A stretch of 64,000 nt of DNA. Source: Octopus sinensis (lineage: Eukaryota). This document shows positions 7,627-50,267 of this stretch, piece by piece. Under the pieces are notes generated by a model that did no database searches, was not told the DNA's origin, and was given only the letters and a program-made list of their open reading frames with translations. The stretch covers positions 12,813,579-12,877,578 of the forward strand of contig NC_043026.1 of NCBI RefSeq assembly GCF_006345805.1, written 5' to 3'. The position numbers were made by a program, and so were the translations under genes. Position 1 is the first letter of the stretch. Each line of letters begins with the position of its first letter.

Positions 7627-8444
7627 AAAAAAGGGCTAGCTGGCAGAATCGTTAGAACACTGGGCGAAATGCGTAGTCGTATTTCGTCTGCCGTTACGTT
7701 CTGAGTTCAAATTCCGCCAAGGTCGACTTTGCCTTTCATCCTTTCGGGGTTGATAAATTAAGTACCAGTTACGCACCGGGGTCGATATAATCGACTTAAT
7801 CCCTTTGTCTGTCCTTGTTTGTCCCCTCCATGTTTAGCCCCTTGTGGGCAATAAATAAATAAGAAACGTTAGGACGCCAGGCGAAATGCTTAGCCGTATT
7901 TCGTCTGCCGTTACGTTCTGAGTTCAAATTCCGCCGAGGTCGACTTTGCCTTTCATCCTTTCGGGGTTGATAAATTAAGTACCAGTTACGCACCGGGGTC
8001 GATATAATCGACTTAATCCCTTTGTCTGTCCTTGTTTGTCCCCTCTATGTTTAGCCACTTGTGGGTAGTAAAGAAATAGGTATTTCGTCTGCCGTTACGT
8101 TCAGAGTTCAAATTCCGCCGAGGTCGACTTTGCCTTTCATCCTTTCGGGGTCAATAAATTAAGTACCAGTTACGCACTGGGGTCGATATAATCGACTTAA
8201 TCCCTTTGCCTGTCCTTGTTTGTCCCCTCTATGTTTAGCCACTTGTGGGTAGTAAAGAAATACGTATTTCGTCTGTCGTTACGTTCTGAGTTCAAATTCA
8301 GCCGAGGTCGACTTTGCCTTTCATCCTTCCGGGGTCGATAAATTAAGTACCTGTTACGCACTGGGGTCGATATAATCGACTTAATCCCTTTGTCTGTCCT
8401 TGTTTGTCCCCTCTATGTTTAGCCCCTTGTGGGTAGTAAAGAAA
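7627..8444 (+). mobile_element. Head-to-tail tetramer of SINE family B inside one 20-bp TSD
   Basis: Four units containing GAGTTCAAATTCCGCC and GCCTTTCATCCTTTCGGGGTCGATAAATTAAGTACC. Flanked by CACTTACAGTCTCTTAGAAA at 7607-7626 and 8445-8464. Confidence 0.88.
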
Positions 8445-10061: not shown

Positions 10062-10198
10062 TGTGTGTGTGTGTGGGGGGGGGGGTATAAAGGGTACTTA
10101 AAGCAGAATTCTGCTGAATATTTATTATATTGAAACAACATGTTTCACCATTCTGTTTGAATTTTCATGTGGTTGTTTACAAACCTCCTCTCGTTTAA

Positions 10199-11200
10199 CC
10201 CTTTTGTTTACCATATTTCTGTTGAGATGTTTTGTTTTTTTTTTTCAATTAGCTTTGAAGATAACTAAGAATTTAGTAAGTCGTTGCCAGTGCCGCCCCG
10301 ACTGGCTTCCGTGCCGGTGGCATGTAAAAAGCACCATCCGATCGTGGCCGTTGCCAGCCTCTCTTGGCCCCCCGTGCTGGTGGCATGTAAAAAGCACCAT
10401 CTGTCCGTGGCCGTTTGCTAGCCCCGTCTGGCACGTAAAAATCACCCACTACACTCACGGAGTGGTTGGCGTTAGGAAGGGCATCCAGCCGTAGAAACAT
10501 TGCCAGATCAGACTGGAGTCTGGTGCAGCCTTCTGGCTTCCCAGACCCCAGTTGAACCATCTAACCCATGCTAGCATGGAAAGCGGATGCTAAATGATGA
10601 TGATGATCAGCATTCAGCTAGTGTTGGGAACATAAGTTGTAACTAAGGTTTGGTGGAAGATTATATAAGGTAACGCCAGCTCCGCCACATGACTTTTAGA
10701 GGCTCTCTGCAACTTTTTGAGGCCCCATCCCTTCAATCAAAATTCATCATCGACGCACCTTTTATTCATAGCTATATTTTACTTTATTCTATTTGAAGTT
10801 CAATATTTCATGTTATCTGAAAGAACATCTCTAACCCTTTCGTTACTGTATTTATTTTGAGATCCTCTGTATTTCTTTCAATTACTTTAAATATAACAAA
10901 GAATTTAGTAAAAGAGCTTAGTTATCATTAAGCTAGTGTTAGGAACACAATTTGTAACTAAGGTTTGGTGGAAGATTTTAATTCAAAACTTATGAAAACA
11001 AGACATTTGTACTCAGAGCCAGAGGTGGTTTCCGCCGGGTTGGTATCAAAAGGGTTAAGAATTGTTTCTCTATTATATATTTTAACCCTTTTGTTACCAT
11101 ATTTCTGCTGAGATGCTCTGTGTTTCTTTCAATTAATTTTAAATATAACAAAGAATTTAGTAAAAGAGCTTAGTTATCATTAAGCTAGTCTTAGGAACAG
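10199..11200. mobile_element. Cluster of three piggyBac-like MITEs: 10199-10660 (interrupted by a family C copy at 10280-10607), 10835-11054 (complete), 11086-11200 (partial)
   Basis: Ends read (T/C)TAA|CCCTTTYGTTAC ... GTATCAAAAGGG|TTAA. The body is shared with 53319-53498. Confidence 0.75.
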
Positions 11201-17822: not shown

Positions 17823-18186
17823 GTATACTTAAATGCATAGCTAAGTTTCAGCTAGAACCACCCTGGGACATGGTTAATGTAGAGACCCCATTTGGAAACA
17901 AGAATCAATGATGTTTCACATTACAGTTGTTCTGGGGGCACCATAACCCATTTGAGTAAAGGGTTATTGTCTGCAGTGATAGATCTGGGTGTATAGGGTG
18001 GAACTGAAATTTGTTGGAGATATTCACCCAGGAACCATTTCGATATCATAATTTGTTTCTTCTTCTTCTCCTATGTGTCTTGGCATGATGTTAAAGAGAG
18101 GACGGTTGGCATAAGGACCAAGCTGATGCTGTTGGTGGTGACCCAGCAGGGTCATGAAGTTGATGGCGAAAAACTTAAAACATTAA

Positions 18187-21100
18187 CCCCTTACCCAACA
18201 ATTATTTTGAAAATAAATGTATTTTTTCAGACATATTTTTTAATTGTTTTATTTCACTATGTTTTGAATGGTGATTTCGAGGTATATTTCAAACCTTATG
18301 TCAAAAAAGAGTTTATAATAGACGAAGGAACTCGTTAAGGTATATTTCAAACTTATGTCAAAAAAGAGTTTATAATAGACGAAGGAACTTGTTAAGGTAT
18401 ATTTCAAACTTATGTCAAAAAAGAGTTTATAATAGACGAAGGAACTTGTTAAGGTATATTTCAAATTTATGTCAAATATAATAGGGTCAAATTTCAAATA
18501 TAATAGACGAAGGAACTCGTTAAGGTATATTTCAAACTTATGTCAAAAAAGAGTTTATAATAGACGAAGGAACTCGTTAAGGTATATTTCAAACTTATGT
18601 CAAAAAAGAGTTTATAATAGACGAAGGAACTTGTTAAGGTATATTTCAAATTTATGTCAAAAAAGAGTTTATAATAGACGAAGGAACTCGTTAAGGTATA
18701 TTTCAAACTTATGTCAAAAAAGAGTTTATAATAGACGAAGGAACTCGTTAAGGTATATTTCAAACTTATGTCAAAAAAGAGTTTATAATAGACGAAGGAA
18801 CTCGTTATGGTATATTTCAAACTTATGTCAAAAAAGAGTTTATAATAGACGAAGGAACTCGTTAAGGTATATTTCAAATTTATGTCAAAAAAGAGTTTAT
18901 AATAGACGAAGGAACTCGTTAAGGTATATTTCAAACTTATGTCAAAAAAGAGTTTATAATAGACGAAGGAACTTGTTAAGGTATATTTCAAATTTATGTC
19001 AAAAAAGAGTTTATAATAGACGAAGGAACTCGTTAAGGTATACTTCAAACTTATGTCAAAAAAGAGTTTATAATAGACGAAGGAACTCGTTAAGGTATAT
19101 TTCAAACTTATGTCAAAAAAGAGTTTATAATAGACGAAGGAACTTGTTAAGGTATATTTCAAATTTATGTCAAAAAAGAGTTTATAATAGACGAAGGAAC
19201 TCGTTAAGGTATATTTCAAACTTATGTCAAAAAAGAGTTTATAATAGACGAAGGAACTCGTTAAGGTATATTTCAAACTTATGTCAAAAAAGAGTTTATA
19301 ATGGACGAAGGAACTTGTTAAGGTATATTTCAAATTTATGTCAAAAAAGAGTTTATAATAGACGAAGGAACTTGTTAAGGTATATTTCAAATTTATGTCA
19401 AAAAAGAGTTTATAATAGACGAAGGAACTCGTTAAGGTATATTTCAAATTTATGTCAAAAAAGAGTTTATAATAGACGAAGGAACTCGTTAAGGTATATT
19501 TCAAACTTATGTCAAAAAAGAGTTTATAATAGACGAAGGAACTCGTTAAGGTATATTTCAAATTTATGTCAAAAAAGAGTTTATAATAGACGAAGGAACT
19601 CGTTAAGGTATACTTCAAACTTATGTCAAAAAAGAGTTTATAATAGACGAAGGAACTCGTTAAGGTATATTTCAAACTTATGTCAAAAAAGAGTTTATAA
19701 TAGACGAAGGAACTCGTTAAGGTATACTTCAAACTTATGTCAAAAAAGAGTTTATAATAGACGAAGGAACTCGTTAAGGTATATTTCAAACTTATGTCAA
19801 AAAAGAGTTTATAATAGACGAAGGAACTTGTTAAGGTATATTTCAAATTTATGTCAAAAAAGAGTTTATAATAGACGAAGGAACTCGTTAAGGTATATTT
19901 CAAACTTATGTCAAAAAAGAGTTTATAATAGACGAAGGAACTTGTTAAGGTATATTTCAAACTTATGTCAAAAAAGAGTTTATAATAGACGAAGGAACTC
20001 GTTAAGGTATATTTCAAACTTATGTCAAAAAAGAGTTTATAATAGACGAAGGAACTCGTTAAGGTATATTTCAAACTTATGTCAAAAAAGAGTTTATAAT
20101 AGACGAAGGAACTCGTTAAGGTATATTTCAAACTTATGTCAAAAAAGAGTTTATAATAGACGAAGGAACTCGTTAAGGTATATTTCAAACTTATGTCAAA
20201 AAAGAGTTTATAATAGACGAAGGAACTTGTTAAGGTATATTTCAAATTTATGTCAAAAAAGAGTTTATAATAGACGAAGGAACTCGTTAAGGTATATTTC
20301 AAACTTATGTCAAAAAAGAGTTTATAATAGACGAAGGAACTCGTTAAGGTATATTTCAAACTTATGTCAAAAAAGAGTTTATAATATACGAAGGAACTCG
20401 TTAAGGTATATTTCAAACTTATGTCAAAAAAGAGTTTATAATAGACGAAGGAACTTGTTAAGGTATATTTCAAATTTATGTCAAAAAAGAGTTTATAATA
20501 GACGAAGGAACTCGTTAAGGTATATTTCAAATTTATGTCAAAAAAGAGTTTATAATAGACGAAGGAACTCGTTAAGGTATATTTCAAATTTATGTCAAAA
20601 AAGAGTTTATAATAGACGAAGGAACTCGTTAAGGTATATTTCAAACTTATGTCAAAAAAGAGTTTATAATAGACGAAGGAACTCGTTAAGGTATATTTCA
20701 AACTTATGTCAAAAAAGAGTTTATAATAGACGAAGGAACTTGTTAAGGTATATTTCAAATTTATGTCAAAAAAGAGTTTATAATAGACGAAGGAACTCGT
20801 TAAGGTATATTTCAAACTTATGTCAAAAAAGAGTTTATAATAGACAAAGGAACTTGTTAAGGTATATTTCAAACTTATGTCAAAAAAGAGTTTATAATAG
20901 ACGAAGGAACTCGTTAAGGTATATTTCAAACTTATGTCAAAAAAGAGTTTATAATAGACGAAGGAACTCGTTAAGGTATATTTCAAATTTATGCCAAAAA
21001 AGAGTTTATAATAGACGAAGGAACTCGTTAAGGTATATTTCAAACTTATGTCAAAAAAGAGTTTATAATAGACGAAGGAACTCGTTAAGGTATATTTCAA

Positions 21101-23248
21101 ACTTATGTCAAAAAAGAGTTTATAATAGACGAAGGAACTCGTTAAGGTATATTTCAAACCTTATGTCAAAAAAGAGTTTATTATAGAGGAAGGAACTCGT
21201 TAAGGTATATTTCAAACTTATGTCAAAAAAGAGTTTATAATATACGAAGGAACTCGTTAAGGTATATTTCAAACTTATGTCAAAAAAGAGTTTATAATAG
21301 ACGAAGGAACTTGTTAAGGTATATTTCAAATTTATGTCAAAAAAGAGTTTATAATAGACGAAGGAACTCGTTAAGGTATATTTCAAATTTATGTCAAAAA
21401 AGAGTTTATAATAGACGAAGGAACTCGTTAAGGTATATTTCAAATTTATGTCAAAAAAGAGTTTATAATAGACGAAGGAACTCGTTAAGGTATATTTCAA
21501 ACTTATGTCAAAAAAGAGTTTATAATAGACGAAGGAACTCGTTAAGGTATATTTCAAACTTATGTCAAAAAAGAGTTTATAATAGACGAAGGAACTTGTT
21601 AAGGTATATTTCAAATTTATGTCAAAAAAGAGTTTATAATAGACGAAGGAACTCGTTAAGGTATATTTCAAACTTATGTCAAAAAAGAGTTTATAATAGA
21701 CAAAGGAACTTGTTAAGGTATATTTCAAACTTATGTCAAAAAAGAGTTTATAATAGACGAAGGAACTCGTTAAGGTATATTTCAAACTTATGTCAAAAAA
21801 GAGTTTATAATAGACGAAGGAACTCGTTAAGGTATATTTCAAATTTATGCCAAAAAAGAGTTTATAATAGACGAAGGAACTCGTTAAGGTATATTTCAAA
21901 CTTATGTCAAAAAAGAGTTTATAATAGACGAAGGAACTCGTTAAGGTATATTTCAAACTTATGTCAAAAAAGAGTTTATAATAGACGAAGGAACTCGTTA
22001 AGGTATATTTCAAACCTTATGTCAAAAAAGAGTTTATTATAGAGGAAGGAACTCGTTAAGGTATATTTCAAACCTTATGTCAAAAAAGAGTTTATAATAG
22101 ACGAAGGAACTTGTTAAGGTATATTTCAAATTTATGTCAAAAAAGAGTTTATAATAGACGAAGGAACTCGTTAAGGTATATTTCAAACTTATGTCAAAAA
22201 AGAGTTTATAATAGACGAAGGAACTCGTTAAGGTATATTTCAAACTTATGTCAAAAAAGAGTTTATAATATACGAAGGAACTCGTTAAGGTATATTTCAA
22301 ACTTATGTCAAAAAAGAGTTTATAATAGACGAAGGAACTTGTTAAGGTATATTTCAAATTTATGTCAAAAAAGAGTTTATAATAGACGAAGGAACTCGTT
22401 AAGGTATATTTCAAATTTATGTCAAAAAAGAGTTTATAATAGACGAAGGAACTCGTTAAGGTATATTTCAAATTTATGTCAAAAAAGAGTTTATAATAGA
22501 CGAAGGAACTCGTTAAGGTATATTTCAAACTTATGTCAAAAAAGAGTTTATAATAGACGAAGGAACTCGTTAAGGTATATTTCAAACTTATGTCAAAAAA
22601 GAGTTTATAATAGACGAAGGAACTTGTTAAGGTATATTTCAAATTTATGTCAAAAAAGAGTTTATAATAGACGAAGGAACTCGTTAAGGTATATTTCAAA
22701 CTTATGTCAAAAAAGAGTTTATAATAGACAAAGGAACTTGTTAAGGTATATTTCAAACTTATGTCAAAAAAGAGTTTATAATAGACGAAGGAACTCGTTA
22801 AGGTATATTTCAAACTTATGTCAAAAAAGAGTTTATAATAGACGAAGGAACTCGTTAAGGTATATTTCAAATTTATGCCAAAAAAGAGTTTATAATAGAC
22901 GAAGGAACTCGTTAAGGTATATTTCAAACTTATGTCAAAAAAGAGTTTATAATAGACGAAGGAACTCGTTAAGGTATATTTCAAACTTATGTCAAAAAAG
23001 AGTTTATAATAGACGAAGGAACTCGTTAAGGTATATTTCAAACCTTATGTCAAAAAAGAGTTTATTATAGAGGAAGGAACTCGTTAAGGTATATTTCAAA
23101 CCTTATGTCAAAAAAGAGTTTATAATAGACGAAGGAACTCGTTTGCTGTCGATTTTGGCGAGTCTATCTTTTGACGAGTTAACTCGCCAGAGATAGAAAA
23201 AAACGATTTCGGTCAAAACGCATATATTCGTTTCTGCCGGGTAAGGGG
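18187..23248. mobile_element. Non-autonomous piggyBac-like element carrying a 4.9-kb satellite
   Basis: TTAA (18183-18186) + CCCCTTACCC on the left; GGGTAAGGGG + TTAA (23249-23252) on the right. Confidence 0.78.
18280..23143. repeat. 57-bp satellite array, about 85 monomers
   Basis: Monomer AAGGTATATTTCAAACTTATGTCAAAAAAGAGTTTATAATAGACGAAGGAACTCGTT with few variants. The 19-aa periodicity in the ORF track reflects it. Confidence 0.98.
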
Positions 23249-23799
23249 TTAAATGATACGCATTCTGATAGAAAAGACGCACATCTTTGTTGTTTCAATT
23301 TTTTTATTCCGGGGACAAGAAAAGGAGATAAAACAAAACAATTAGTTGGAGAGAATATTTAACAAATAAACAATTATGTTTTTAATAAATGACAATTCAA
23401 ACTAATGTATAACATGATGGTGATGGTTTTTGTGGTGGCGGTGGTGGTGGGGATGTGAATACTTGCATTTTGGGGACCAATGTGTATACAAAACACTTGA
23501 GTTGTTGAGTAAATGTAAATGAATGCTTTATCAGTTGGAAACAACTGGAATTATTTCAAAATGGATTTTGAGATCTTAAGAGGGAGGAAGTGAAAATCAA
23601 ATCCAAATAACAACAGGAGTGTCTTTGTGATAAGAGGCTTGCTTCCCAACTACATGGTTCCAGGTTCAGTCCCACTGGGTGGCACCTTAAGCAAGTGTCA
23701 TCTACTATAACCAAAGCTTTGTGAGTGGCTTTGGTAGACAGACACAGAAAGAAGTCCATCCTGAATATATGAGTGTGTGTTTGTGTATATATGTATATA

Positions 23800-25320: not shown

Positions 25321-27929
25321 TCCCACACCTATACACACATAGAAATGTATATACACACAGACATGTATGTATGTGTATATCCATCTATATATACATACAT
25401 ACATAAAGATGTATACACACACACACACACATGAGGAGGCAATGCCGACTACTCCCGGATATATTATAAGTATCCTCTGAACTGTTGCCATATCTTCATT
25501 GCTGTTCGAGCGAAGCAGACTCACAGAATATTTCTGAGACAGAAAGACTTCAAGCCAGTATCAAAACCCAATAACCAACCCTGGTAAATAATATTCTTCT
25601 CCTATTTATTTAACACACAATTTACCACCACATTTACATTGCTAAACATTCATTAGACTTATTTCAAACATAAATATGCTGTTATATAGATATTGTTTTA
25701 TTTGCACACACCATTTTATAGACTAGACGTTGTTTAAACACTTTACAGTGTCACATCACAAGTAAAACCTTTCATTTCCAGAATATAATATAAAGTATGG
25801 TTTGGTTATAACTATGTCAAAACTATTTGATGGAAATGTTCATCTAAGGATACACAATTTTACGTAGTTTAAAGTGGATTTCTAAGTCTCAAGTGAAATT
25901 TAAAATTTGCAAATTAATTTCATGGCAGATAAATTAATTGGCTGTTTTTCATAAACTTAATTTTTTAAAAGCTTTGTTGAGGGAGAAGGGCCTTGCATAC
26001 GACCCTTTCATTTTCCAGGGTCTCTGACAGGGATGAGTGGGAGAAACACATTCTCAAAACAAGGGGCCTAATGTGAATGCAGACAAAAGAGAAATCCTCT
26101 GCTAAAAGCAGCTCAGGGGCCAGCTTTTGGTGTGAAATTTGGTGATAGATTTAGTCTGCAACATAGGGTGGCCACAATGGGATTTGAACTCAGTTCATAA
26201 AGAACCACATTACCTACTGGAAGGCATCGTGTCCAGTATTTAATTCTACCACCTCAAACTAGTATTTAAATTATTGACCCCTGCATAATAAAAGTCAAAG
26301 TTAACCATGCCAGAATTTGAACCCAGAACACAAAGTGTCAGTACTAATACCATTCTAACGACTCTACTAATTGAAATGTTTTTAACTGATTTTTTATTTC
26401 AATATTAAACTTTGTATATAAATGGAATTGTTCTGGTGATTTCATTTCTATTTTATATCTTGAAGCAAACAAGAAGAATTGTTTGAATATTAAACAATTT
26501 GGTGACAACGTATATTTTCTCTCTCAGCACATCTTTATCCTACATCAACATTTTAATGTGCAATGCATTAAATATGTTTTCTCACCATCTTCAATATTAT
26601 TTATCAGATGGATGGCTTCTGAGAATTACTTCACATTGTCTGCATTTATTATAAACTCTATTACAAACAAAGAACAAAGTCCCTAAAATGCCCCTAAAAA
26701 CATATTCAATCATGACAACTTATGGGAGGGTCATGGTTAGAGAGTTTTTGACTATAGCATTGCTAGACAAGAATTAACTTTCAGTTAAAAATCAAAAATG
26801 GAAATCATAGTTTTAATATATTTTAAACAAATGTATTTCTTTTATTTTAAATATATTTACTGTTTATAAAAATAATTTTAATGTTTCAATATTTCAACTT
26901 TATAAATTGTATTTCGGAATTATAAAAGTTAAACATCCTATTAAATTTAAAAAGATTGTATTTTTAATATATTTTTATAAATTACATTTAAATATTGTAT
27001 TTTTAATAATAATAATATATGTTATAAATTTGTATATTTCTTTAAGTTAACCAAGAGAATTGTCTAAAAATTAAACAATTCCAAGGTAACATCAGATATA
27101 CCAACGAACATGCACCTGTGTATAATGTAATTAATCATTTGTTATTACCTGGCCAAGGTACGACCTGGTTATGTTTCTCTAATGATGCTCTCTCAAGCAA
27201 TAATATATTCATAGAAATCAAACAGTTAAACAAGTGAACTTATTCATGTAAAAAGGGGTCAGTTGGCAAAGGCATTCACACATTTTACTAAAAGACTGTT
27301 TCCAGTATCTGCTCTGATGCCCTGAGTTCAATACCTAGTGAGGTCAGCTTTACTTTATATTATGATTGATAAAGAACCAGTCAAGTACTGGAGTGGATTT
27401 GTCATCATTGTTGTTCTTCTTCCTCTTCAACCACTTCTTTCTTTCTATGTGCAAGACATTGCCAGGGGTTACACAAGTAGAGAGAAAGGCTCCTCCAGAT
27501 TTCAAATCTCTTCAAGTCATTCTATATCTTATGTCATCTGGTTGACCACTTTTGATTTTAAATACAGCCAGAGAGGTCAGATCTTCTGATGCTGTTTTTC
27601 AACTTATTTTCCATCAATGTAGACCCAGAGTTTATTTACATGCCTCCTCTTCATCCATTTCCTCCATCCTTCATCGTTCTTCTCTTTGTTTATATTATCA
27701 AGTCTGCAACAACTGTTGTAGTTGACCCTTCCACTTTTTTCAGCCGTTTAAGGCTCTGGTCTCAAAGACACCCATCCGGTCACTGCCACTGTGCTTCTGT
27801 TGTTGTTGTTGTTGTCAACACCAGCTCATTGGCCATTCCCAGCATCAGCTCTGCCACTATAAATCCGTATGGAGTCAGGACCTTTTGGTTTGTGAATCTG
27901 TGGTGTATATATATATATATATATATACA

Positions 27930-29920
27930 CACACAGAGGAGTGGCTGTGTGGTAAGAAGCTTACTTCCCAACCACATAGTTCCGGGTTCAGTTCCACTGC
28001 GTGATACTTTGAGCAAGTGTTTCCTATTATAGCCTCAGGCCAACCAAAGACTTGTGAGAGGATTTGGTAGACGGAAATGAAAGAAGCCCGATATCATCAT
28101 CATCATCATCATCGTTTAACGTCCGCTTTCCATGCTGTCATGGGTTGGACAATTTGAGTGAGGACTGGCGAACCAGATGGTTGCACCAGGTTCCAATCTC
28201 ATCTGGCAGAGTTTCTATAGTTGGATGCCCTTCCTAATGCCAACCATTCCGAGAGTGTACTGGCTGCTTTTACGTTACACCGGCACAAGGGCCAGCCAGG
28301 CGAAACTGGCAACGGCCACACTCAAATGGTGCCTTTTATGTGCCACCTGCACAGGAGCCAGTCCAGCAGCACTGGCAACGACCTCGCTCGAATCATTTTT
28401 TGCGCCACCAGCACAAGTGCCAATGAGGCAATGCTGGTAATGATCACACTCAAATGGTGCTTTTCATGTGCCACCAGCAAGGGAGCCAGACAGCTGCTTT
28501 GGCAATGATCACACGTGGATGGTGCTGTTAGCGCTTCACTGGCACGGGTGCCAGTCATCGAATTTGGTTCAATTTTGATTATATATATATTTATATATTT
28601 AAGGCGGCGAGCTGGCAGAGTGGTTAGCACGCCGGGCGAAATGCGTAGCCGTATTTCGTCTGTCGTTACGTTCCGAGTTCAAATTCCACCGAGGTCGACT
28701 TTGCCTTTCATTCTTTCGGGGTCGATGAATTAAGTACCAGTTACGCACTGAGGTCGATATAATCGACATAATCTCTTTGTCTGTCCTTGTTTGTCCCCTC
28801 TATGTTTAGCCCCTTGTGGGTAGTAAAGAAATATATATTTATATATATATATATAAATGTGTGTATATGTTTGTGTTTATGTTTGTCCCCCAGCTTCGCT
28901 TGACAACCGATTTTGATGTGTTTGCGTCCCTGTATCTTAGCGATTTGGCAAAAGAGACTGATAGAATAAGTATTGGGCATACCAAAGAATAAGAACTGGG
29001 GTCCATTTATATTTAACTACAGGCGGTGCTCCAGCATGGCTGCAGTCAATTGACTGAAACAAATAAAGGAATACAATATATACATTATATATATATATAT
29101 ATATATATACATATGCATACATAACATATATATATATTATGAGAGACAACATAAAGGGGGAATGGTAATGTGGGAGGTGACAAGAATTAGAAGCAGTGGG
29201 GCAAGGGCAGAAGAGTGGCTGTGTGGTAAGAAGCATGCTCGCCAACCACATGTCTCTGGGTTCAGTCCCATTGCATGGCACATTGGGAAAATCAAAACCT
29301 TGTGAGTGGATCTGTTAGACGGAAACTGAAAGAAGCCTGTCATATATATTTATGTGTCTCTGTTTGTCCCACCAACAGAGCTTGACAACCAATATTGGTT
29401 TGATTACATCCCCGTAACTTAGCAATTTGGCTAAAGAGACCAATAGAATAAGTATTGGTCTTAGAAAGAATAAGTCCTGAGGTTGATTTGTTTGACTAAA
29501 GGCAGTGCTCCAGCATGGCCACACTCAAATGACTGAAGCAAGTACAAGAATAAAAGAATATATATATATACACGTGGCCTTACTTGTGCCCGGGCTAGTA
29601 GGGTGCTAAGAGCACCATCCAAGCGTGATCGTTGCCAGAGTGGTTAACTGGCTTCCGTGCCAGTGGCACGTAAAAGACACCATTCGAGCGAGGTCGTTGC
29701 CAGTACCGCCTGACTGGCCCTCCTGCCGGTGGCACGTAAAATGCACCCACTACACTCTCGGAGTGGTTGCCGTTAAGAAGGGCATCCAGCTGTAGAAACT
29801 CTGCCAGATCAACATTGGAGCCTGGTGCAGCCATCTGGTTTGCTAGCCATCAGTCAAAATCGTCCAACCCATGCTAGCATGGAAGGCAGACGTTAAACGA
29901 TGATGATGATGATGATGATA
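27930..29920. mobile_element. Mosaic of SINEs: A head 27930-28092, C (minus) 28093-28580, B 28602-28832, A tail 28850-29070, A 29205-29550, C 29570-29918
   Basis: Each segment matches the family diagnostics defined above. Confidence 0.75.
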
Positions 29921-30159
29921 CATAATACATATATATATTATATATATACATATATATATATATACACATACACACATAATATATATATATGTTTATGTAA
30001 AAGAAGGGAAATGAAATGTTGAAGTTGATATTTAAAAGGAGACAGTGAATGAGAGAGAGAGATGAAAGTAAAAGGGGACATATGAAGGATATAAAATAGG
30101 AAAAGTATGGTTGTTGTTGTTATTGTTTATTATGATGATGATGATGATGTAGGTGGTGA

Positions 30160-31695
30160 GCTGGCAGAACAGTTAGCATGCTGGGCAAAATGCTTGGCAG
30201 CATTTTGGTTGTCTTTACGTTCTGAGTTCAAATATTGCCGATGTCAACTTCCATTCTTTCAGGGTCGATAAAATAAGTACCTTTCGAGTTCTGGGGTCGC
30301 TGTAATCAACTTACCTGCTCCCCTGAAACTGCTGACCTTGTGCTAAAATCTGAAGCCATTCTTATTATTATTAATATTATGATAACTCGTTTGCCGCTAC
30401 AGTCTGAGTTCAAATTCCACCAAGGTCGACTTTGCCTTTCTTCCTTTTGGGGTCAATTCAATAAGTACCAGTTACACACTGGAGTTGTGCAACTGGTACT
30501 TATTCCACCAAATTCCACAAGGTCGACTTTGCCTCTCATCCTTTTTTCTGATTGATAAAATAAGAACCAGTTAGGGGCTGGGTCTGATGTAATCAACTAG
30601 TCCCCTCACCCGAAATTTCAGGCCTTCTTCCTATAGTAAGAAAGGATTATTATTATTATTATTACTGTGACGAGCCGGCAGAATTATGTGGATGCAAAGC
30701 AGAATTTTGACCGTCTTTACATTCTGAGTTCAAATTCCACCAAGGTTGATTTCGCCTTTCATCCTTTTGGGATTGATAAATTAAGTTCTAGCTGAGTACT
30801 GGGGCCCCCTTCCTTGAAATTGCTGGCCTTGTGCCAAAATTCAAAATCAGTTTTATTATAATAGAAATATCGTAAAAAATAGGGATTTTCATAGAAGGCT
30901 AACAAACCTGCCATACACAGACAACTTCAGCTTTATATATAGAGAGATAATTAGGGTTCAGCTAACAGCTTCACCACATCCCGAAATTAGAAATGGGAGT
31001 TAAAAATTCCTTTTCTACTACTATGAGAATCTCCATGACGGTAAACATACTTTTTTACGAAGGCAAAGAGAAAGACAATGAATCAACATGACCAGAATTA
31101 ATTATATTCGTGTTTCGAGATTAAAGTAATTTGAATTTTACTTACTTCTCTCTTTAGTATAATATTTCCAATTTTTATACAATTTCAAAGTGCTATGACT
31201 GAATATGTACACAATCGAGCCTAATTATAATTATATGGATAATTTTACCTATAAAGGTAATTTTAACGTACCAATTGACTTGGTAAAATTGTTAATTAAT
31301 TGATTAATTAATTAATTAATTAAATTAGCGTGCTAGCGGGGTGCAAAGAGCACCATAAGAGTGTGGTCACTGACAGAGCGGCTAACCGGGTTCTTTGCCA
31401 GTGGCACATAAAAGGCACCATTCAAGTGTGATCGTTACCAGCGTCGGCTTACTGGCACTCGAGCCCCGTGCTAGTAGGGTGTTAAGGGCACCATCCGAGC
31501 ATGATCGTTGCCAGAGCGGCTATCTGGCCTCCATGCCGATGGCACGTAAAACACACCATTCGAGTGTGATCGTTACAGCATTGCCTTACTGGCACCTATA
31601 CCAGTGGCATGTGTAAAAGATTCGAGCGAGGTCATTGCCAGTACTGCCTGACTGGCCCCGTGCCAGTGGCACGTAAAAGCACCCACTACAGTTAG
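30160..31695 (+). mobile_element. Old degenerate SINE B pieces (30160-30860) and a truncated family C copy (31325-31695)
   Basis: Repeated CTGAGTTCAAATTCCACCAAGGTCGAC/GCCTTTCATCC motifs and GTGCCAGTGGCACGTAAAAGCACC units. Confidence 0.6.
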
Positions 31696-33009
31696 GTGCT
31701 GGGGTTGATGTAATCGACTAGACCCCACACCCAAAATTTCAGGCCTTGTGCCTATAGTAGAAAGGATTATTATTATTATTATTATCTTCAAATTATCACC
31801 AAAAAAAGATGGGGGCATGGCTGTAAGGTTAAGGAATTCACTTTGCAATCTTGTGGTTTCAGGTTCAGTCCCACTTTGCAGCACCTTAAAGAATTAATTT
31901 CTTCTAATGTTCCAGGTTGACTTAAGCCTTGTGAGTGGGTTTCGTACCTGGAACTGATAAAGCCTATGGTATATACATGTGGGTGTATATTCATGTATGC
32001 ATATCTACATTTGTACTTATGTGTGTATGCATTTATGTGTGTGTGTGTGTGTGCGTGCGTATGTCTGCTCATGTCTCCTTGTTTTGACATCTGCTGCTAA
32101 TTATAAACAAATGTCACGTCAAACAAACAGAGTCGTTTGTTTGCAGTGTTCCACCAGAAAACATATCCAACCATTGTGCTGTTCATGTTGGAAGAACTTG
32201 GGGAAATATTCTCTTGCTTGAAGCCAGCTGAAGATTGGTGACTCTCATCAAGTGTAGTCATAGACTTGACTGAGTGGAACTCACAAGAACCTGGCAAGAA
32301 ACAAAACAAAATTATTAGAAGGAAAATACAGAAAAAAAAATACACCACCTGATGTATTATAAAGGTTTTGACATCCATTTTCCCTAACTGGCATGGGTAG
32401 GACAGTTGACGAGGAAGCAGTGAACCAGAGGACATTGCTGAGCTCCAATGAAAGATTTGGCAAGATTTCTACAGCTGGATGATCTTCTTAACACCAGATA
32501 CACACATACACGTGTGTGTGTGTGTTTATGCGTGCATAAGAGTATATGAATGAATAAACATGGGTTTACTTATGTTTGATTGCACATCTGACTTTGTATG
32601 CTAGCATGGGTTAGATGAATATATTATTGTAGCCTTGTTTTACAGACAGACAGCCTTCCTATTGCTCACCCAAAACCATCTTGCAAGAACAAAAGTTCTT
32701 ATTTCCCATGTCTTCCAAGGTGGGGGTGATTGGTTGACAGATGTTTCTGCTTGGAGCAACTTAAAAGAGATTGCAAACATAAACAAATGCACAGACACCT
32801 ATGCGCACACACACTCAGCTCAAGTTCACTGCTTCCTGTAGCAGAAACAGCTGGAAGCTAATGAAGGTGTCTACGTAACTCTTGTTCTTTTGTCATTCAT
32901 TGATTCATAGCTATAAACATACATGGACACAAATATTTATACATGGGTATGTGAAGGTATATTCATATAGTTTCACACGTGCATTTATGTATATGTGTAT
33001 GTATGTATA

Positions 33010-34385
33010 TATCATCATCATGATCATTTAATGTCCTCTTTCCATGCTAGCATGGGTTGGGCTGATTGACTGAAGGCTGGTGAACCAGATGGTTGCACCA
33101 GGCTTCAATCTTGATCTGGCAGAGTTTCTACAGCTGGATGCTTTTCCTAACGCCAACCACTCTGAGAGTGTAGTGGGTGCTTTTACGTGTCACCGGCACG
33201 GGCCAGTCACGCGATACTGGTAATGACCTTGCTCAAATCTTTTACACGTGCCAGTAACGCAATGCTGGTAACTATCAAGCTCGAATCGCGACTTTTATGT
33301 GCCACTGGCACGGAAGCCGGTTAGCCACTCTGTCAACGATCACACTCGTATGGTGCTCTTTGCTCCTCGCTAGCACAGATGCCAGTCATCGGATTTGATT
33401 TTGATTTCACTTGCATCAACAGGTCTTCGCAAGCAGAGTTTTAGTGTCCAAAGAAGGAAAAGGTATGCATAAGTGGGCTGGTTACACCCCTTGCATAGAC
33501 CACGAGGTTATGTTCTCATGTGGCTTGCCGAGTCTTCTCATGAACGGCATATTTCCAAAAGTGTCTGTCACTAATTATTTCCTTGGTGAGGCCTAAAGTT
33601 CGAAGGTCATGCTTCACCACTTCATCCCAGGTTTTCTTGGGTCTACCTGTTCCACAGGTTCCCTCAACCGCTAGGGTGTGGCACTTTTTCACACAGCTAT
33701 CCTCATCCATTCTTGCAACATGACCATACCAGTGCAGTCGTCTTTTGCACACCCCATCTGCTGCTTCTTAGGTCCAACTTTTCTCTCAAGGTACTTACAC
33801 TCTGTGTCGAGTATGCACACTGACATTACACATCCATCGGTGCATACTGGTTTCATTCCTTGCGAGCTTACGCATGTCTTCAGCAGTCACAGCCCATGTT
33901 TCACTGCCATGTAGCATGGCTGTTCGTACACATGCAACATACGGTCTATCTTTTACTCTGAGTGAGAGGCCCTTTGTCACCAGCAGAGGTAAGAGCTCTC
34001 TGAACTTTGCCCAAGCTATTCTTATTCTAGCAGCTACACTTTCAGCGCACCCTCCCCTGCTACTGACTTGGTCACCTAGGTAATGGAAGCCATCAACTAC
34101 TTCTAGTTTTTCTCCCTGGAATGTGGCGGAAGTTGATCTCTGCACATTTTCAGTATTTATAGCTCCCGAGCATCTGTCACACACAAAAACTATCTTCCCA
34201 GTTAGCCTTCCTTTGATATTGCTGCACCTCTTATGTGTCCATAGCTTACACTGGGTACATCTTAGAGTTTCTACCTAAACCTCTACTACAGATCGAGCAG
34301 GGTCATCTACCTGAAGGGATTTGTGGTTTGGTTGCCTTCCCACTTATTAGGATTTTGGTTTTAGCTAGGTTGACTCTAAGGCCCT
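33010..34385 (-). mobile_element. 5'-truncated, disrupted RTE-clade LINE with a PHD-like insert; its 3' UTR is the family C sequence
   Basis: Translations include PCSIC...CTQCKLWTHKRC...CDRC, FHYLGD, AWAKFRELLP, HGSETW, RRLHWYGHVARM and GRPKKTW. Ends in the (ATG)n tail at 33010. Confidence 0.88.
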
Positions 34386-35944
34386 TTGATAATATATATA
34401 TATATATATATTAATATTTAGCAGAAGTAACAAAGTGACCCAAAATTCGAAAGTTTCGTTAATTAGCATTTATCAAACTGGTTCTTTGAAGGTATATTCC
34501 CAGACCTCCAAACACCACTTTGATGAGTGTCAATTCTTGGATCTTGAGTCCCTACTGTCACGCCCCTATCACCCCTACCTCTATCTTTCATCTCTCAATC
34601 ACTCTCTCTTCTTCTTTTTACTCTACTATCTTACTGCTGTGACAAAGATTGGCAGTAAATCTCTTCTCTTCACCATTCTTCCAATGCAACTAGGGATGTT
34701 ACTGGACCCACCTGAGTCTCTCCCCAAAACTCAGCCACTCCTTTTCATATATACATATATATGTATGTGTATCCTGAAGAAGGTCTCTTTTATTTTTCAT
34801 TCCTCCTGGGGTCAATAGAGTAACAGTCTATTGATCCCAGGAGGCGGTGGAGGATCATTCTGATGATGATGGGTCACCAGAATGTCATTAAACACCCCCA
34901 CCAATATTTCCTAATCCACCTCATTGAACCCCCAATACTTCATAATAAACTACACCAAGTTATAACTCCTCACCTAATACAACACAAAACACACTTCACC
35001 TGCCAAACCCCTTTTTCATACAAACACATCTTTCTCATTGCTACCCAAACATCGTCTCTGAAATTAAATATAATTAAGAAGAACCTACCTTTCATTAATT
35101 GGGCTTATTCATTAACCAATCTTTATGATCTCAATCAGCGACAAATAATAACGATCCTCTCAACATGCTGTCTATCAGTGTGATTATATGAAAGCCCATC
35201 TTTGGATAAGCTTTCCGAGTTAATCAATGTTGTGTATGATAATTGTGTGGATTATATTGAAATGTCGAGAGATTTACAGCATTTGTCAGGTTAAGAACAG
35301 TTTCATCTCCAGCTTTATTGGTATCTGTAAATCCAGGTAAATATGATGGAAACCAAGCCAACCATGACTGTCCCATCATTTTCAGTACATATAATCATTA
35401 GTAATACTTATATTCCATCTAACTAGCAAAATGTTCAGTCTGTCTTGTATCTGACAAATGTCTATGAAACATAATAAAGTCTATGTTTTGCTAATTGTTC
35501 CATGTTAACGAAGTTTGAACATGATTGCTGTGTGTTGGGACATAATATAGCATGTATACCAATTAAAGTTAATTTTCTCTACAGCTTAGAGTGTCTCGTT
35601 ATTGAGTGCTTTTGGAACAGGGGAATCTCTTTGACTAATTATCGTTAAATAAATCTAAGCCACACATGACTATTTCTTTGTGATGTTGAGAGCAAATATC
35701 ATTTCCAGTGAAAATAATTATTTCTAATATTTCGACTCCATGTAATTAATGAAACTTATTAATACATCTTAGAATAGATTGTAATAAGTTGTTTAAATAT
35801 TAATTAGACAAGATTAATTCCCTGACAGAAATACATAAATGTTTTGTTTGTGTTTTTCAAATGATGAAGCAAACATCATCTCCCTGAAACTTTAATATTT
35901 TCACAAAGCTAAATGTTTTCCTTATATTTCTTTACAGATTCACT

Positions 35945-38900
35945 ATGGAAGACCAGACTGAAAATACTTTAAGGAAACTTATGCCTCAGAAATGGGCTTT
36001 GAGTTACTCAACACCAAAATGGGATGAAGAAGGAGTTGACAATAAAAGGGGTAAATACGAGGAAGATGATGGTTCAAGGAGAAGTGATGAAGGATATTGT
36101 AGTGTTAGTTCAGAGAGAGAATCAGCAGTGAAGGCCATATCTGTGGCAAGACTCAACACACATGGAGACAAAGAAAGCACAAAAGAAACTGAAAAACAAA
36201 TAGTTGCTAAAATACAGAGGATTCGTCTTCAATATGATCGCTGCATGATGTTTATGGAGCATATAGTTAAGGAGAGCAAACATTATGAAAGTCTGGGGTT
36301 AAGTGCCAATTGTATTTTAGAAAAGGTCAAAGAGAGACTTGGAATTTTGCTGAAATATACTAAAGAACAGAATATTTCTATTGAGCAGGACCTCGAATGG
36401 TTTCAACAAAGACTCTTTGACATTTATGTCACCTGTAACCCATACAACCACAAGACCATTGAACCAGCAAAAGTAACCACAAAATTTCGGCCGCTTCAGC
36501 CAGTTGTGACCAGAGAAGCAAATATTGAGGAATCTGGAGAAGAATTTGAAGAAATCCCAATAATATCCAATATTGTCATCATAGAGGAGGGAGTGATGAC
36601 ATATTCCCACCTTTGTAAGATAATAAGTTTAGTAACAAGAGACAGTGACAGAATTGATGTCCATTGTCCATCTTCTGTGACCAGTTTCACAAGAATCAGT
36701 GAAGACATGGTTCTGGCAACCCTCCCATTCCAAGAAATGATTCTTATTATCAGCCCCAAAACCTTCAAGATCAAAAGGATACAGTTGGGGTTACATATGG
36801 TGAGTTACTTGGAAGATTCTACACTTATAGGTGTAGAAATGTTTGGTAAGACAGTTTACCAATTTGATTGGGAGGATAATACCATAAACTATCAATTTAT
36901 TACCAAAGAAACCCCTACAGATATTGCTGTAGGGGTCCAGAATATACTTGTAATTACATTCGCCAGCATCAACAGAGTAATCTGTTACAAACTGGATGGC
37001 CAACAGTTATGGGAGGTAGAGACCCATTCTCTGCACCTCCCAAGTAAAATCTCTCTCTACCAAAATTATTTCTATGTCCTCCAGGGACAAATAATTTATA
37101 GGATTTCAGCTAAAGGTGGTGTAACAAGGAGGGACATTGGCAGGAAATGCCGCTCTATTTCTGTTGGTAAAGATACCATTTTGGTTACAGATTATTGCAG
37201 CAAACCACATGGTATTCAAATGAGTAAAGACTTTTGGCCCAAACTGTCATACAACCACCAGCTACATACCCCCAGTTTAAAAGACTATATTGATATTGAG
37301 AATTGCTACAACATTACAAATATTCTACCTATGTCTACATCTTCTATATTAATAATTTACAAAAACAAGAAAGCTAAATTATTCACTGATAACGGGGAAA
37401 TAATTAACCAAAATAATTCAGTTTTCCTTGAGCTTCCTTCTTTCTGTTGTAGAATAAACGCAAACAGATTCCTGGTATTTTATCGTGAAAAGAAAGGATT
37501 TCAGTATATCACCTGTCCTGAACTAAGAAAAGGCTCTTTAATAAAGGTGCAAACTGATTACATGAAAATATGTCATATTGTATCAAATAAGTGTCTGGCT
37601 GTGACCACAACTGAAAACAAAAGCGAGGTCCATATCCTCTTGATCAACGAAGATAAAGTTGACATTGCAGAAAGAATTTCTCTGGGACATCATAATGTCA
37701 GCATTGCTGCAACTCCAATTAATTTTGTAGTCGTAGATGGAAACGAAAATAAAATGGTATTTTATTCCACATGTGGTGAAGAACTTTTTCAAAAATACCT
37801 TCCATTCTATGGCTACCCTCATCACATCTACTCTGATAATGTTTATTTCTATGTCCTCTTCAGGAGACACTCTATTCTCATATGTTACGATCTACATGGA
37901 CAAATAAAATGGCAGTGGGAACTGCCTTTCCCTGTTCACCCTCACATTGCTGTTTTCCAAGGAACTCTTTATGTCCCAGACACTCAACTCAACAGGGTTC
38001 TTCTTTACAAGTATCAAGACCGGTCGTCTGCCTGCCTTTTACCCATTAAAAATCCTTATATCAGAAATCTAAATCTACGTCTCAAAGAAAAGGAGAATGA
38101 CCAAAAACTTGTCATTGGCGAAATATGTAATCTGGCCAATGGACAGTTGGTGGTATCTGACATCAACCATGATTGCTTGTTGTACATTTCTGAGGAAGGA
38201 GACATTGTGTCCAGATTATCTCTGCCGTCTACAGCCACAGATATATGTCGATGGGATTCTAATCATATAGGGGTCACATTACCCCTACAGAAACAATTAA
38301 GGGTCATTGGAAACCTATCAAAGAGAGTGAGAAGTGTATCATTAAGGCAGCCTTATGTACGGATGTGTAAGATGGGTGAAGGTGAAATTATTTGTTATTG
38401 TGATAAACCATCACATTTAGACATTTTAGCCATCAATTATTATAATCAAGTCGAAGTAATTAAGACAATTAATATCCCTGTGTTTGTGAAATCATTATCA
38501 ATAGACAAGAAAACAGAAAAGCTATTAATTGTTACTAGGGAAAAAGCTTTTCAGTACAACACTAGAATAGGTGGTGGTGGTCATGGCGGTGATGGTAGTA
38601 TTAGTAGTAGTGATGGTATGGTTTCCAGTGATTCAGAGACCAAAACAGAAGCTTTCTTCAAGGACATTAGTGGTGGTGGTCATGGCGGTCATCAGATGGT
38701 CCCCAGTGTTTTAATGTCCCAAGTGAAACGTCCCCTCAGTCTCCAAGGTGGATCTATTGACCAAACGTCTGTTTATCTGATAGACAGAAGCCGTATGTTT
38801 GCAATAAACGATCAGAACTTGTTGGTTACTGATCTCGTTACTAATAATCAACTTAATTATTATATCGACCTGGTGGATGTATTTTCCAGAAACATTTCTC

Positions 38901-41497: not shown

Positions 41498-41765
41498 ATA
41501 TTTCCAGAAATATTAAACTTCAATCTTCTTCTTCTTCTTATTATTATTGTTGTTGTTGTTGTTGTAAATGGCTTCGCACGGGAATCGAACCTGCATCGCA
41601 TACATTGCATTCTACACACTAACACTTATTGTTGTAACATTCCTCAACACTCTCTCTTTGTGTGTGTGTGTATATCTATATACAGTATATATACATGTGT
41701 TTATATATATATACACACATATTTAGGAATGTATGTATAGAAGTAAGGCTATAAGTATGTATGTT

Positions 41766-41814
<49 letters not shown>

Positions 41815-41889
41815 GCATGCATGTATGTATAGGAATGTCTGGTCCGAAAGCAGAGACTTTCATAATCATTGATTCTCCATTAAAAGGCA

Positions 41890-42045
41890 GACGACCACCA
41901 CCGCCGTCGTGGTCGTGGCCGTCTCCGCCGTCGTGGTCGTCGTGGTGGTCGTCGTCGTCGTCGTCGTCGTCGTCATCATCATCATCGTCATCATCATCAT
42001 CGTCGCCATCATCGTCATCATCATCATCATCATCGTCGTCATCAG
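41890..42045. repeat. (CGT/GGT/CAT)n trinucleotide microsatellite
   Basis: Directly visible; a shorter paralog lies at 56010-56080. Confidence 0.9.
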
Positions 42046-42224
42046 CGTTGTGTGTGCGTGTGTGCAGTCTGCATCTGACAGTTTTTAACGTTTAATAAGA
42101 ATAGATTGTTGTTGTTGTTGTTGTTGCAGTGACATTCCAACTGCACACACACACAAACATTGCCTTTCGTCCTCGTAGGGTTGTTGTTGTTGTTGTTGCT
42201 GTTGGGGGTTCATAAAAAAAGAGA

Positions 42225-42560
42225 AGGACACTTTAAGAAGCATTCAGTAAAAGCTTTCCCATAACTGGTCATTTTTCATGCTAGAAATAGAAACCACTTT
42301 ACTTTTCATATAAAATTTGAAGGACAGCTAAGAAGCATTCATTTCATGCTAGAAAGAGCCACCTAAACCTTCACATTTTTGTTTCATCACAAATAAAAAT
42401 TGAAAGACAATTTTCAAAGCATCCATGTCAAATATTGTCCTATAGATGGCCTAACATCATGCTAGAAATAACAGCCAAATACTCTGAAATTTGTATCGTT
42501 TTTCATCAAAAAAGTGAAGGACACTTTAAGAAGCAACTCTAAAGATATTGTCCTGTGGCG
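42225..42560. repeat. Dispersed internally repetitive element (family E); paralog at about 56250-56620
   Basis: Recurring GAAGGACACTTTAAGAAGCA and CATGCTAGAAATA(A/G)CAGCCAAAT blocks. Confidence 0.55.
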
Positions 42561-42699
42561 GTTTAAGTGTAAAATATTATAAAAGTATGCATCTATGAGT
42601 TTTATGTGTTTAAAAAACATAGCAAAGACATGTGTGTATATGTAGGTATATATAAATATACATGTGTATAAATGTTCCTTGATGATGTATATGCTTCTT

Positions 42700-43830
42700 C
42701 CCTAATAACTTGCAGAGAAATGGATATTTTTCATGGAATTTCCTACAAATATGCTTCAGATGGTGTAGATTCCGATTCTATGGGGATTTATTGGAAAAAC
42801 CTTTTTCTTTCAGGGACAAACGGTTTTCCCAACTTGTAACTGGAGATGAAAAACAGATGTGTATGAAAACGCAATGCAAAAATGTTACTGGAGCTGGAAT
42901 AAAGTCCCCCAAACAACAACCAAGGACGAATATCCATGCAAAATAAAAAGAAAAAAAGTTATGCTTTGTGTTTGGTAGGATCATCATCATCATCGTCATC
43001 ATTATCATCGTTTAACGTCCGTTTTCCATGCTAGCATGGGTTGAACGGTTCAACTGGGGTCTGGGAAGCCAGGAGGCTGCGCCAGGCTCCAGTCTGATCT
43101 GGCAGTGTTTCTACGGCTGGATGCCCTTCCTAACGCCAGCCACTCCGAGAGTGTAGTGGGTGCTTTTTATGTGCCACCTGCACAGGTGCCAGACAAGGCT
43201 GGCAAACGGCCACGATCGGATGGTGCTTTTTACGTACCACCAGCACGGGGGGGGGGGGGGGGGCCAGACGGGGCTGGCAACGGCCACGATCGGATGGTTC
43301 TCTTACGTGTCACCAGTACTGGTATCTCAGCTACAATTTCCATTAATGTTGAGAGATTTCGATTTCGACTTTCACTTTTATTTGATTTGATCATAAACGA
43401 TTTGATTTATTATGAGCTTCTCCCACAAAACCAGACAATTAATTCTGAAGTGTATTGCTATCAGCTGGCTAACTTGCAAATAATAAAAAAAAAATCAAAG
43501 AATTGAGGCTGAAGATTGGACAACAGGAAAGAGTGGTAGAGTTGCAACAAAACAATGCCTGACCTCATGTCTTTGGCCACCGGAACAAAGCTACATGAAC
43601 TTGTCCGGGATCTCTTAACCCCTCAACCATATTCTTCTGATATTGCACCATCCGACTACCACTTGTTCTTGTCTCTACAGAACTCATCACAAGGGAAAAC
43701 ATTTAACCATTTGAATGGAATCAAAATGCATCTAAATGATATTTTGTCTTTGAAATTATTCAAATTTTATACTGATGGAATATTTAAATTGCCTAATAGA
43801 TGGGAAAGGGTCGTTAATAATTAAGGGAAA
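42700..43830 (+). mobile_element. Degenerate mariner (DD34D) transposase, split by a family C insertion at about 42980-43390
   Basis: LVTGDEK, KVMLCVW, YELLPQNQTINSEVYCYQL, PYSSDIAPSDYHLFLSLQN and FYTDGIFKLPNRWERVV. Confidence 0.88.
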
Positions 43831-49080: not shown

Positions 49081-49175
49081 TAATTAAAAGCAGTCTTCGT
49101 CACCTTACATTGCCCCTCGCCAACTCCATATCCTTAAGATTTAGTGCCTCTATGTTGGCATTGTACTTAAGTACT

Positions 49176-50155
49176 GCAGAAATAGCAGCCAAATCTCGCA
49201 TTAATCATAGAACCTTTCAGTCACTGCTAGAAATAGCAGCCAAATCTCGCATTAATCATAGAACCTTTCAGTCACTGCTAGAAATAGCAGCCAAATCTCG
49301 CATTAATCATAGAATCTTTCAGTCACTGCTAGAAATAGCAGCCAAATCTCGCATTAATCATAGAATCTTTCAGTCACTGCTAGAAATAGCAGCCAAATCT
49401 CGCATTAATGATAGAATCTTTCAGTCACTGCTAGAAATAGCAGCCAAATCTCGCATTAATCATAGAATCTTTCAGTCACTGCTAGAAATAGCAGCCAAAT
49501 CTCGCATTAATCATAGAATCTTTCAGTCACAGCTACAAATATATTTCTTTACCCACAAGGAGCTAAACACAGAGGGGACAAACAAGGACAGACATAGGTA
49601 TTAAGTCGATTACATCGACCCCAGTGCGTAACTGGTACTTAATTTATTGAACCCGAAAGGATGAAAGGTAAAGTCGACCTCGGCGGAATTTGAACTCAGA
49701 ACGAAATACCTATTTCTTTATTACCCACTAGAAATAGCAGCCAAATCACACACAGATCATGGAATCTCTCTTCTATAGCTAGAAATAGCAGCCAAATCAC
49801 ACAGATCATGGAATCTCTCTTCTATAGCTAGAAATAGCAGCCAAATCACACACAGACCATAGTCTCTCTTCTATAGCTAGAAATAGCAGCCAAATCACAT
49901 ACAGATCAGGGAATCTCTCTTCCATAGCTAGAAATAGCAGCCAAGTCACACACAGATCATGTAATCTCTCTTCTATAGCTAGAAATAGCAGCCAAATCAC
50001 ACACAGACCATAGAGTCTCTCTTCCATAGCTAGAAATAGCAGCGAAATCATACATAGATCATAGAATCGCTCTTCCATAGCTAGAAATAGCAGCCAAATC
50101 ACACACAGATCATGGAATCTCTGTTATATAGCTAGAAATAGCAGCCAAATCCCGC
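49176..50155. repeat. Two related 51-bp minisatellite arrays (7 and about 8 units) separated by a minus-strand SINE B
   Basis: Units GCTAGAAATAGCAGCCAAATCTCGCATTAATCATAGAA... and AGCTAGAAATAGCAGCCAAATCACACACAGATCATAGAA... Confidence 0.93.
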
Positions 50156-50267
50156 ACAAATCAGGGACATCTCTCGTTCATAAAACACAGAAGAGACACA
50201 AAGAATCGAGGCGCCAAAGACCGAAAGTCTACAGAATTAAAAACAATGAAAATCTTCTTTGCTTAAT

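Follow-up and report, generated by a model that had tools for sequence, protein, structure and literature searches.

A TTAA-flanked, probably piggyBac-type element with an internal 85-monomer minisatellite in a zinc-finger gene cluster of Octopus sinensis

We found a 5-kb repeat element with the structure of a TTAA-specific transposon in a 64-kb stretch of Octopus sinensis chromosome CM016888.1 (the window; its position 1 lies at about CM016888.1:12,813,579). A 455-aa zinc-finger open reading frame of the window is recorded at GCA_006345805.1 CM016888.1, the locus there agrees with the window without a difference over 16,419 bp, and proteins of that record carry the label Octopus sinensis. The element spans window positions 18183-23252 and consists, in order, of TTAA-CCCCTTACCC, a 93-bp arm, 85 tandem units of 57 bp, a 105-bp arm and GGGTAAGGGG-TTAA, the arm lengths including the ends (Table 1). 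It is likely, in our judgement, that a non-autonomous piggyBac-type, TTAA-specific element was inserted here in a zinc-finger cluster, and that its internal repeat then expanded in place. An earlier sequence-only reading of this DNA had noted the 57-bp array, flanks of about 95 and 105 bp, the perfect TTAA ends and a position inside a zinc-finger cluster. All these features hold: Tandem Repeats Finder (TRF) gave a single array of period 57 with 85.0 copies and 96% matches, and the surroundings were identified as a C2H2 zinc-finger cluster by Pfam matches on the flanking long open reading frames (ORFs) and by their 84-bp periodic arrays.

The two ends form a perfect inverted pair. Exactly two occurrences of the 14-mer TTAACCCCTTACCC were found in the 64 kb, one at 18183 (+) and the other at 23239 (-), against a chance expectation of 0.31 matches even with two mismatches allowed. 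The inverted repeat is perfect over 10 bp and matches at 12 of 16 bases. When the window was scanned for TTAA-plus-10-bp perfect inverted pairs within 8 kb, every pair but that of the element could be put down to inverted copies of a short interspersed element (SINE), and those others were rejected as related elements on that ground. The adjoining flanks, about 345 bp on each side, are unique within the window. Beyond the 10-bp repeat, the two arms do not resemble each other, and neither arm resembles the monomer, above shuffled controls; derivation of the monomer from the arms was rejected for the same lack of signal, and the monomer's 3′ part matches 23173-23186 at 11 of 14 bases, too weakly to be of use.

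The element is non-coding: an Rfam search of the window gave no match, no transposase was found in the window or in the other loci fetched, and the open frames of the array, searched as a concatenated 19-aa-repeat query, have no homologues among 5.8 billion proteins. These frames reach 905 aa (18469-21186 (+)) and 887 aa (18494-21157 (-)) and could pass for repeat proteins, yet are spurious, because 57 is 19 × 3 and one frame per strand lacks stop codons.

Mobility is recorded at an empty paralogous site. The locus L008 (CM016888.1:9,635,389-9,662,218), 3.2 Mb away on the same chromosome, was reached via a paralog of a neighbouring gene that encodes an 1850-aa protein. It has the same flanks, and at the very point of TTAA-element-TTAA in the window it has one TTAA without interruption. 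Once the element and one TTAA are taken out, the flanks in the window match L008 1643-1840 in a single ungapped alignment that spans the junction (86% over 200 bp, E 7e-60). The L008 junction reads CTTAAAACA-TTAA-ATGATAAGC, and the window reads CTTAAAACA-TTAA, element, TTAA-ATGATACGC; read further downstream, the TTAA is followed by ATGATAAGCATTCTGAT in L008 and by ATGATACGCATTCTGAT in the window. [quoted passage not shown] That SINE (about 333 bp, L008 1841-2173) lies 108 bp downstream of the empty TTAA and is absent from the window, showing that retroposition went on after the segmental duplication.

Because L008 has a single TTAA with the same flanks, the 5,066 bp that distinguish the window (the element plus one TTAA) represent a TTAA-specific transposon insertion or a precise excision from the paralog: either they were gained at a TTAA, with duplication of that TTAA, later than the segmental duplication, or the element was cleanly lost from L008. 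Gain or loss alike demonstrates TTAA-precise mobility. The joined flanks with their single TTAA thus bear out the earlier view of the TTAA-bounded unit as a transposon insertion. An empty site, for which the same reading had pointed to other individuals or species, was recovered in this same-chromosome paralog. No ortholog of the site was recovered from O. vulgaris, a failure due to the rapid duplication of the family to which the neighbouring gene belongs. Searches through the 1850-aa neighbour led to seven O. vulgaris loci (L002-L007 and L009), paralogous units of 16 kb. Their colinearity is limited to window 26372-42800, and none has the insertion flanks; the adjacent zinc-finger gene retrieved mostly generic C2H2 proteins, with no near-identical match among the matches listed. 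A calibration for octopus transposable elements equates a Jukes-Cantor distance of 0.09 with about 25 My (PMC13282606). On that scale the roughly 12% divergence of the paralogs would date the segmental duplication, very roughly, to 15-20 My before the present, and an insertion could be no older.

The array has a legible history of growth at this locus. Its monomer types, in order, are ICCJACBAAKBCBDCBALMBBABDADCBCAAAACBA-ECBBBACBFAAGAAH-ECBBBACBFAAGAAH-NBA-ECBBBACBFAAGAAH-O, and the two main variable sites are monomer positions 15 (C/T) and 53 (C/T, a CpG-to-TpG change). Three blocks of 15 monomers, 856 bp each, are 100% identical, and an 18-monomer segment that includes the first of them recurs downstream, identical but for one extra C in monomer N. 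This monomer joins the AAACC 5′ part of an edge-type monomer to a C-type 3′ part, and is therefore read as an unequal-crossover junction. From the identical blocks and the hybrid monomer it follows that 33 of the 85 monomers (1.9 kb; 39%) came from two events, one of 15-monomer and one of 18-monomer register. The array grew in place, and these two events were unequal-crossover duplications. Both have remained without substitution since, which at the octopus transposable-element rate would make these latest duplications well under about 0.3 My old. The first and last monomers share a 58-bp variant, the usual mark of unhomogenised edges, and this suggests a founder with one or two such units; the edge variant is probably the older form, because edge monomers escape homogenisation.

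The sequence of events that we favour would begin with a founder made up of about 200 bp of arms and one or two copies of the approximately 58-bp internal segment. A transposase supplied in trans, presumably a piggyBac transposase, would have inserted this founder at a TTAA in intergenic DNA of the zinc-finger cluster, duplicating the TTAA. The internal segment, probably still short at insertion, would then have expanded in place to the 85-copy, 4.9-kb minisatellite by repeated unequal exchange between misaligned monomers, the latest two events duplicating 15 and 18 monomers. The resulting element would serve no host function.

Two TTAA-specific superfamilies come into question for the ends. 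piggyBac elements have 5′-CC...GG-3′ termini with a CC[C/T]T motif and repeats of 12-19 bp (PMC2872659), and Kolobok elements have RR...YY termini (PMC9587614), AGGRR in the case of the Xenopus T2-MITEs (PMC6004289). The octopus element has a perfect TTAA on both sides, as elements of both superfamilies do, and termini of the form CCCCTT...AAGGGG, that is, 5′-CC...GG-3′; the fourth base is C rather than T, with CCCT present one base in. Because these ends are CC...GG and not RR...YY, they exclude Kolobok and fit piggyBac with two deviations, one in the fourth base and one in the repeat length of only 10 bp. A target-site duplication (TSD) of TTAA does not by itself fix the superfamily, the short inverted repeat has CCCC in place of CCYT at its start, and the best-known TTAA MITE with an expanded internal repeat, Xmix/Xstir, proved to be Kolobok. 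We nevertheless regard an origin from Kolobok or any other TTAA-targeting superfamily as very unlikely, given the contrast in termini and given that the coral piggyBac-type MITEs include a family (III) with the same CCCCT start (CCCCTCAG...; PMC2872659). A Helitron- or Helentron-borne satellite of the bivalve type (no TSD, A/T insertion, 5′-TC and 3′-CTRR ends, a 3′ hairpin, no inverted ends) was rejected, since both a TTAA TSD and inverted CCCC/GGGG ends are present here. In the sister species O. vulgaris, piggyBac activity is reported to have been recent in six families, with 474 young insertions (PMC13282606). In Table 1 of that paper the 3,666,023 bp given for the 474 recently active PiggyBac insertions exceed the subtotal for all terminal-inverted-repeat elements (2,175,404 bp), probably a misprint. 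We also noted a canonical MITE family of about 190-236 bp with TTAA/CCCTTT(C/T)GTTAC ends in both O. sinensis and O. vulgaris (Table 1). Its copy in L008 is missing at the matching window position (about 17877), a second presence/absence difference of a TTAA element between these two paralogs.

The sequence-only reading had gone further, proposing that a non-autonomous piggyBac of about 200 bp had become a mobile carrier or seed of satellite DNA and might nucleate heterochromatin. The TTAA-specific insertion holds and the CC...GG ends fit piggyBac; the carrier or seed role is not borne out by the DNA sampled. Under that explanation the element moved with a long array already inside it, as one member of a family with variable numbers of the 57-mer that spreads or seeds the satellite. 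With TSD and inverted ends intact, the whole 5-kb unit could still be cut out, and piggyBac elements tolerate large cargo. There are also precedents in Xmix/Xstir (PMC6004289) and miDNA4 (PMC12628747), and in DTC84 (PMC3879986). Against it, at least 39% of the array arose at the locus by very recent duplication, no array-derived ORF occurs anywhere in the protein collection, and a second copy of the ends or of the monomer was found neither elsewhere in the window nor in a further 27 kb or so of O. sinensis (L008) and some 238 kb of O. vulgaris loci, the closest paralogous segments included. The termini and monomer numbers, for which a genome-wide tabulation had been proposed, were surveyed in the window and in these additional loci (L002-L009, about 265 kb in all, mostly O. 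vulgaris paralogous units); this is about 0.01% of a 2.7-Gb genome, a sample that excludes only very high copy number and is far too small against a family of hundreds to a few thousand copies. Exact-pattern scans of JGI metagenome contigs for the monomer and the left end, and of IMG/VR viral contigs for the monomer, returned nothing, and neither copies with other monomer numbers nor standalone 57-mer arrays appeared in the sampled octopus loci or in the metagenome and viral collections. Literature searches gave only chance matches to the terminal sequence, and found no paper on an octopus satellite catalogue or on such an element. On balance we think it unlikely that the element is a mobile carrier, and more doubtful still that it belongs to a still-active octopus piggyBac-type MITE family whose copies shuttle 57-bp arrays of very different lengths and shed standalone arrays.

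Much of the array length might instead be an assembly artefact, with blocks duplicated by the assembler and a true element of far fewer monomers. The three 856-bp blocks and the two segments of about 1,027 bp are 100% identical, as a mis-join within a tandem array could give; yet the first 36 monomers are a non-periodic mix of 13 variants, the junction of the 18-monomer duplication holds a biologically sensible hybrid monomer, and 52 monomers are left even without both duplications, and we rate this explanation quite improbable. Little credence, in turn, attaches to the idea that the array was taken over for a host function, as a nucleation site for heterochromatin or piRNA or as a platform for the neighbouring zinc-finger proteins, and was kept long by selection. 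Its location inside a zinc-finger cluster would suit that idea, as would the retention of CpGs by the monomer, which has an observed/expected ratio of 1.7 where the window as a whole has 0.66. Youth and homogenisation account, though, for this excess, and no conservation was seen, the array being missing both in the paralog and in all the O. vulgaris loci sampled.

Several points weigh against insertion of a short piggyBac-type founder followed by growth in place, the account that we prefer. The empty site is a paralog and not an ortholog, and precise excision of the piggyBac type could equally mean loss from that paralog. The copy number and the latest duplications could in part be artefacts, as identical blocks in a long-read assembly of a tandem array. 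The perfect inverted repeat of 10 bp is below the 12-19 bp usual for piggyBac, starts with CCCC and not CC[C/T]T, and is accompanied by no subterminal inverted repeats in the arms above shuffled controls. A single copy was seen in the DNA surveyed, so that family status, and mobility as a family, are putative. The partner transposase, which the sequence-only reading had wanted found, was not detected by tblastn with an approximate T. ni query, either in the window or across the fetched loci (about 290 kb), and we therefore infer its existence.

Several other features of this region were noted. The neighbouring 1850-aa gene is an intact ORF at window 35945-41497 (+) without a Pfam domain, a copy that is not on record as an O. 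sinensis gene. Its relatives number only 37 proteins, from O. vulgaris, O. sinensis and O. bimaculoides, and the family's tandem units, about 16 kb in size, are interspersed with zinc-finger genes (two units in L009, for example). This has the look of a gene family that is confined to octopuses and duplicates fast. A composite structure is present twice in the window (49173-51552 and 60947-63624), each time as a 51-bp tandem array followed by a tandem array of a 184-bp tRNA-like SINE unit; an inverted SINE copy separates the two. The SINE unit forms a third array at 7645-8444. These 184-bp arrays are SINE-derived and satellite-like. In O. vulgaris, L004 20028-22679 (OX597841.1) is a 2.65-kb near-perfect palindrome with a (TA)n centre and inverted SINE-like copies inside. 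It was rejected as a second TTAA-CCCC element, the palindrome symmetry running past the TTAA ends into GCGCATGCGCG flanks, and is either a foldback element or an assembly artefact.

Table 1. Coordinates of the octopus element, of its array and of other repeats (window positions unless a locus is named)
Feature	Position	Strand	Basis or remark
Left TTAA TSD	18183..18186	.	Sequence, and single TTAA at the matching site in paralog L008
Left terminal inverted repeat CCCCTTACCC	18187..18196	+	Perfect reverse complement of 23239-23248
Left non-repeat arm, 93 bp, AT-rich, non-coding	18187..18279	+	Sequence
Array, 85 monomers of 57 bp, consensus AGGTATATTTCAAACTTATGTCAAAAAAGAGTTTATAATAGACGAAGGAACTCGTTA	18280..23143	+	TRF
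First monomer, type I, 58-bp AAACCTTATG variant	18280..18337	+	Same variant as last monomer
18-monomer segment (monomers 34-51), source of later duplication	20176..21202	+	Contains 15-monomer block 1 (20347-21202)
15-monomer block 2, 856 bp	21203..22058	+	100% identical to block 1
18-monomer duplicate (monomers 67-84)	22059..23086	+	Starts with hybrid monomer N (22059-22116); holds 15-monomer block 3 (22231-23086)
Last monomer, type O	23087..23143	+	58-bp variant of the first monomer, truncated by 1 nt
Right non-repeat arm, 105 bp	23144..23248	+	Holds 12-bp perfect palindrome CGAGTTAACTCG at 23175-23186
Right terminal inverted repeat GGGTAAGGGG	23239..23248	-	Read from sequence
Right TTAA TSD	23249..23252	.	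Sequence, and single TTAA in L008
51-bp arrays of the composite structures	49173-50175, 60947-62005		
SINE-unit arrays of the composite structures	50634-51552, 62483-63624		
TTAA/CCCTTT(C/T)GTTAC MITE copies	53315-53502, 10832-11061, 11082-11199, 10195-10279; L008 1129-1364; L002 929-1151; L005 13069-13288		

The locus brings together two steps that are usually inferred apart: TTAA-precise insertion, recorded by the empty paralogous site, and stepwise growth of the repeat, recorded by the hybrid monomer and the identical multi-monomer blocks. It is a good teaching and reference case for the transposon origin of satellite-like DNA, possibly the first described for a cephalopod. On the practical side, annotation pipelines should mask the spurious ORFs of the array (up to 905 aa, on both strands), and the 5-kb array could serve as a length-polymorphic marker. 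The current view of satellites or of piggyBac is unchanged unless the family proves active and carries arrays between sites. Should a shuttle family exist, cephalopods would have an active satellite shuttle open to experiment, and its cognate transposase would be one that copes with tandem cargo of several kilobases.

Expansion of internal tandem repeats toward satellites is already well documented for a number of MITEs, and the octopus element works like them. It has the structure by which MITEs with tandem repeats (TR-MITEs) are defined, namely short non-coding arms (93 and 105 bp), inverted ends, a TSD and an internal tandem array (85 monomers). Close parallels come from Xenopus. Xmix/Xstir of the T2-MITE family (Hikosaka and Kawahara, 2000, 2004; via PMC6004289 and PMC12628747) is likewise a TTAA-targeting MITE whose internal segment was amplified to tandem repeats that ride between inverted ends, and composite forms of MITE plus array exist. 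The ends of Xmix are AGGRR, and its present assignment is to Kolobok; those of the octopus element are CCCC...GGGG. Xstir is very abundant, with MITE, composite and standalone forms, whereas the octopus element has one known copy. The Tc1/mariner MITE miDNA4 (Scalvenzi and Pollet; via PMC12628747) has an internal satellite whose monomer occurs singly or as an array of variable length, and the path proposed for it leads from a MITE through a longer internal array to a satellite; it differs from the octopus element in its TA target site, its Tc1/mariner ends and the documented copy-number variation among many copies.

Among molluscs, the DTC84/pearl-type MITEs of bivalves are a MITE-like cassette of short flanks around core tandem repeats (PMC3879986), as in the octopus element, and the length of their arrays changes by recombination at monomer junctions (PMC3879986). 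DTC84 has up to about five core repeats, a putative AA TSD, a microsatellite tail and high copy number, in contrast to 85 repeats, a TTAA TSD and true inverted ends in octopus. The DTC84/pearl-type elements have since been linked to the Helitron/Helentron type (PMC7492417), and Helitron-borne arrays are documented in oysters. The coral CMITEs (PMC2872659) and the mPok/Pokey elements of Daphnia (PMC3849761) share with the octopus element the TTAA TSD, short inverted ends that begin with CC, lack of coding capacity and mobilisation in trans (in octopus, as inferred). A CMITE measures about 100 bp, and the arrays that CMITEs form have the whole element as their unit, whereas the octopus array is of an internal unit. 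Pokey also has internal repeated segments, but these are few and come from the rDNA spacer (PMC3849761). What sets the octopus element apart from Xmix/Xstir, miDNA4, the DTC84/pearl-type elements and the Helitron-borne oyster arrays is its piggyBac-type ends, its cephalopod host and an unusually long array, 85 monomers, held within intact ends and TSDs.

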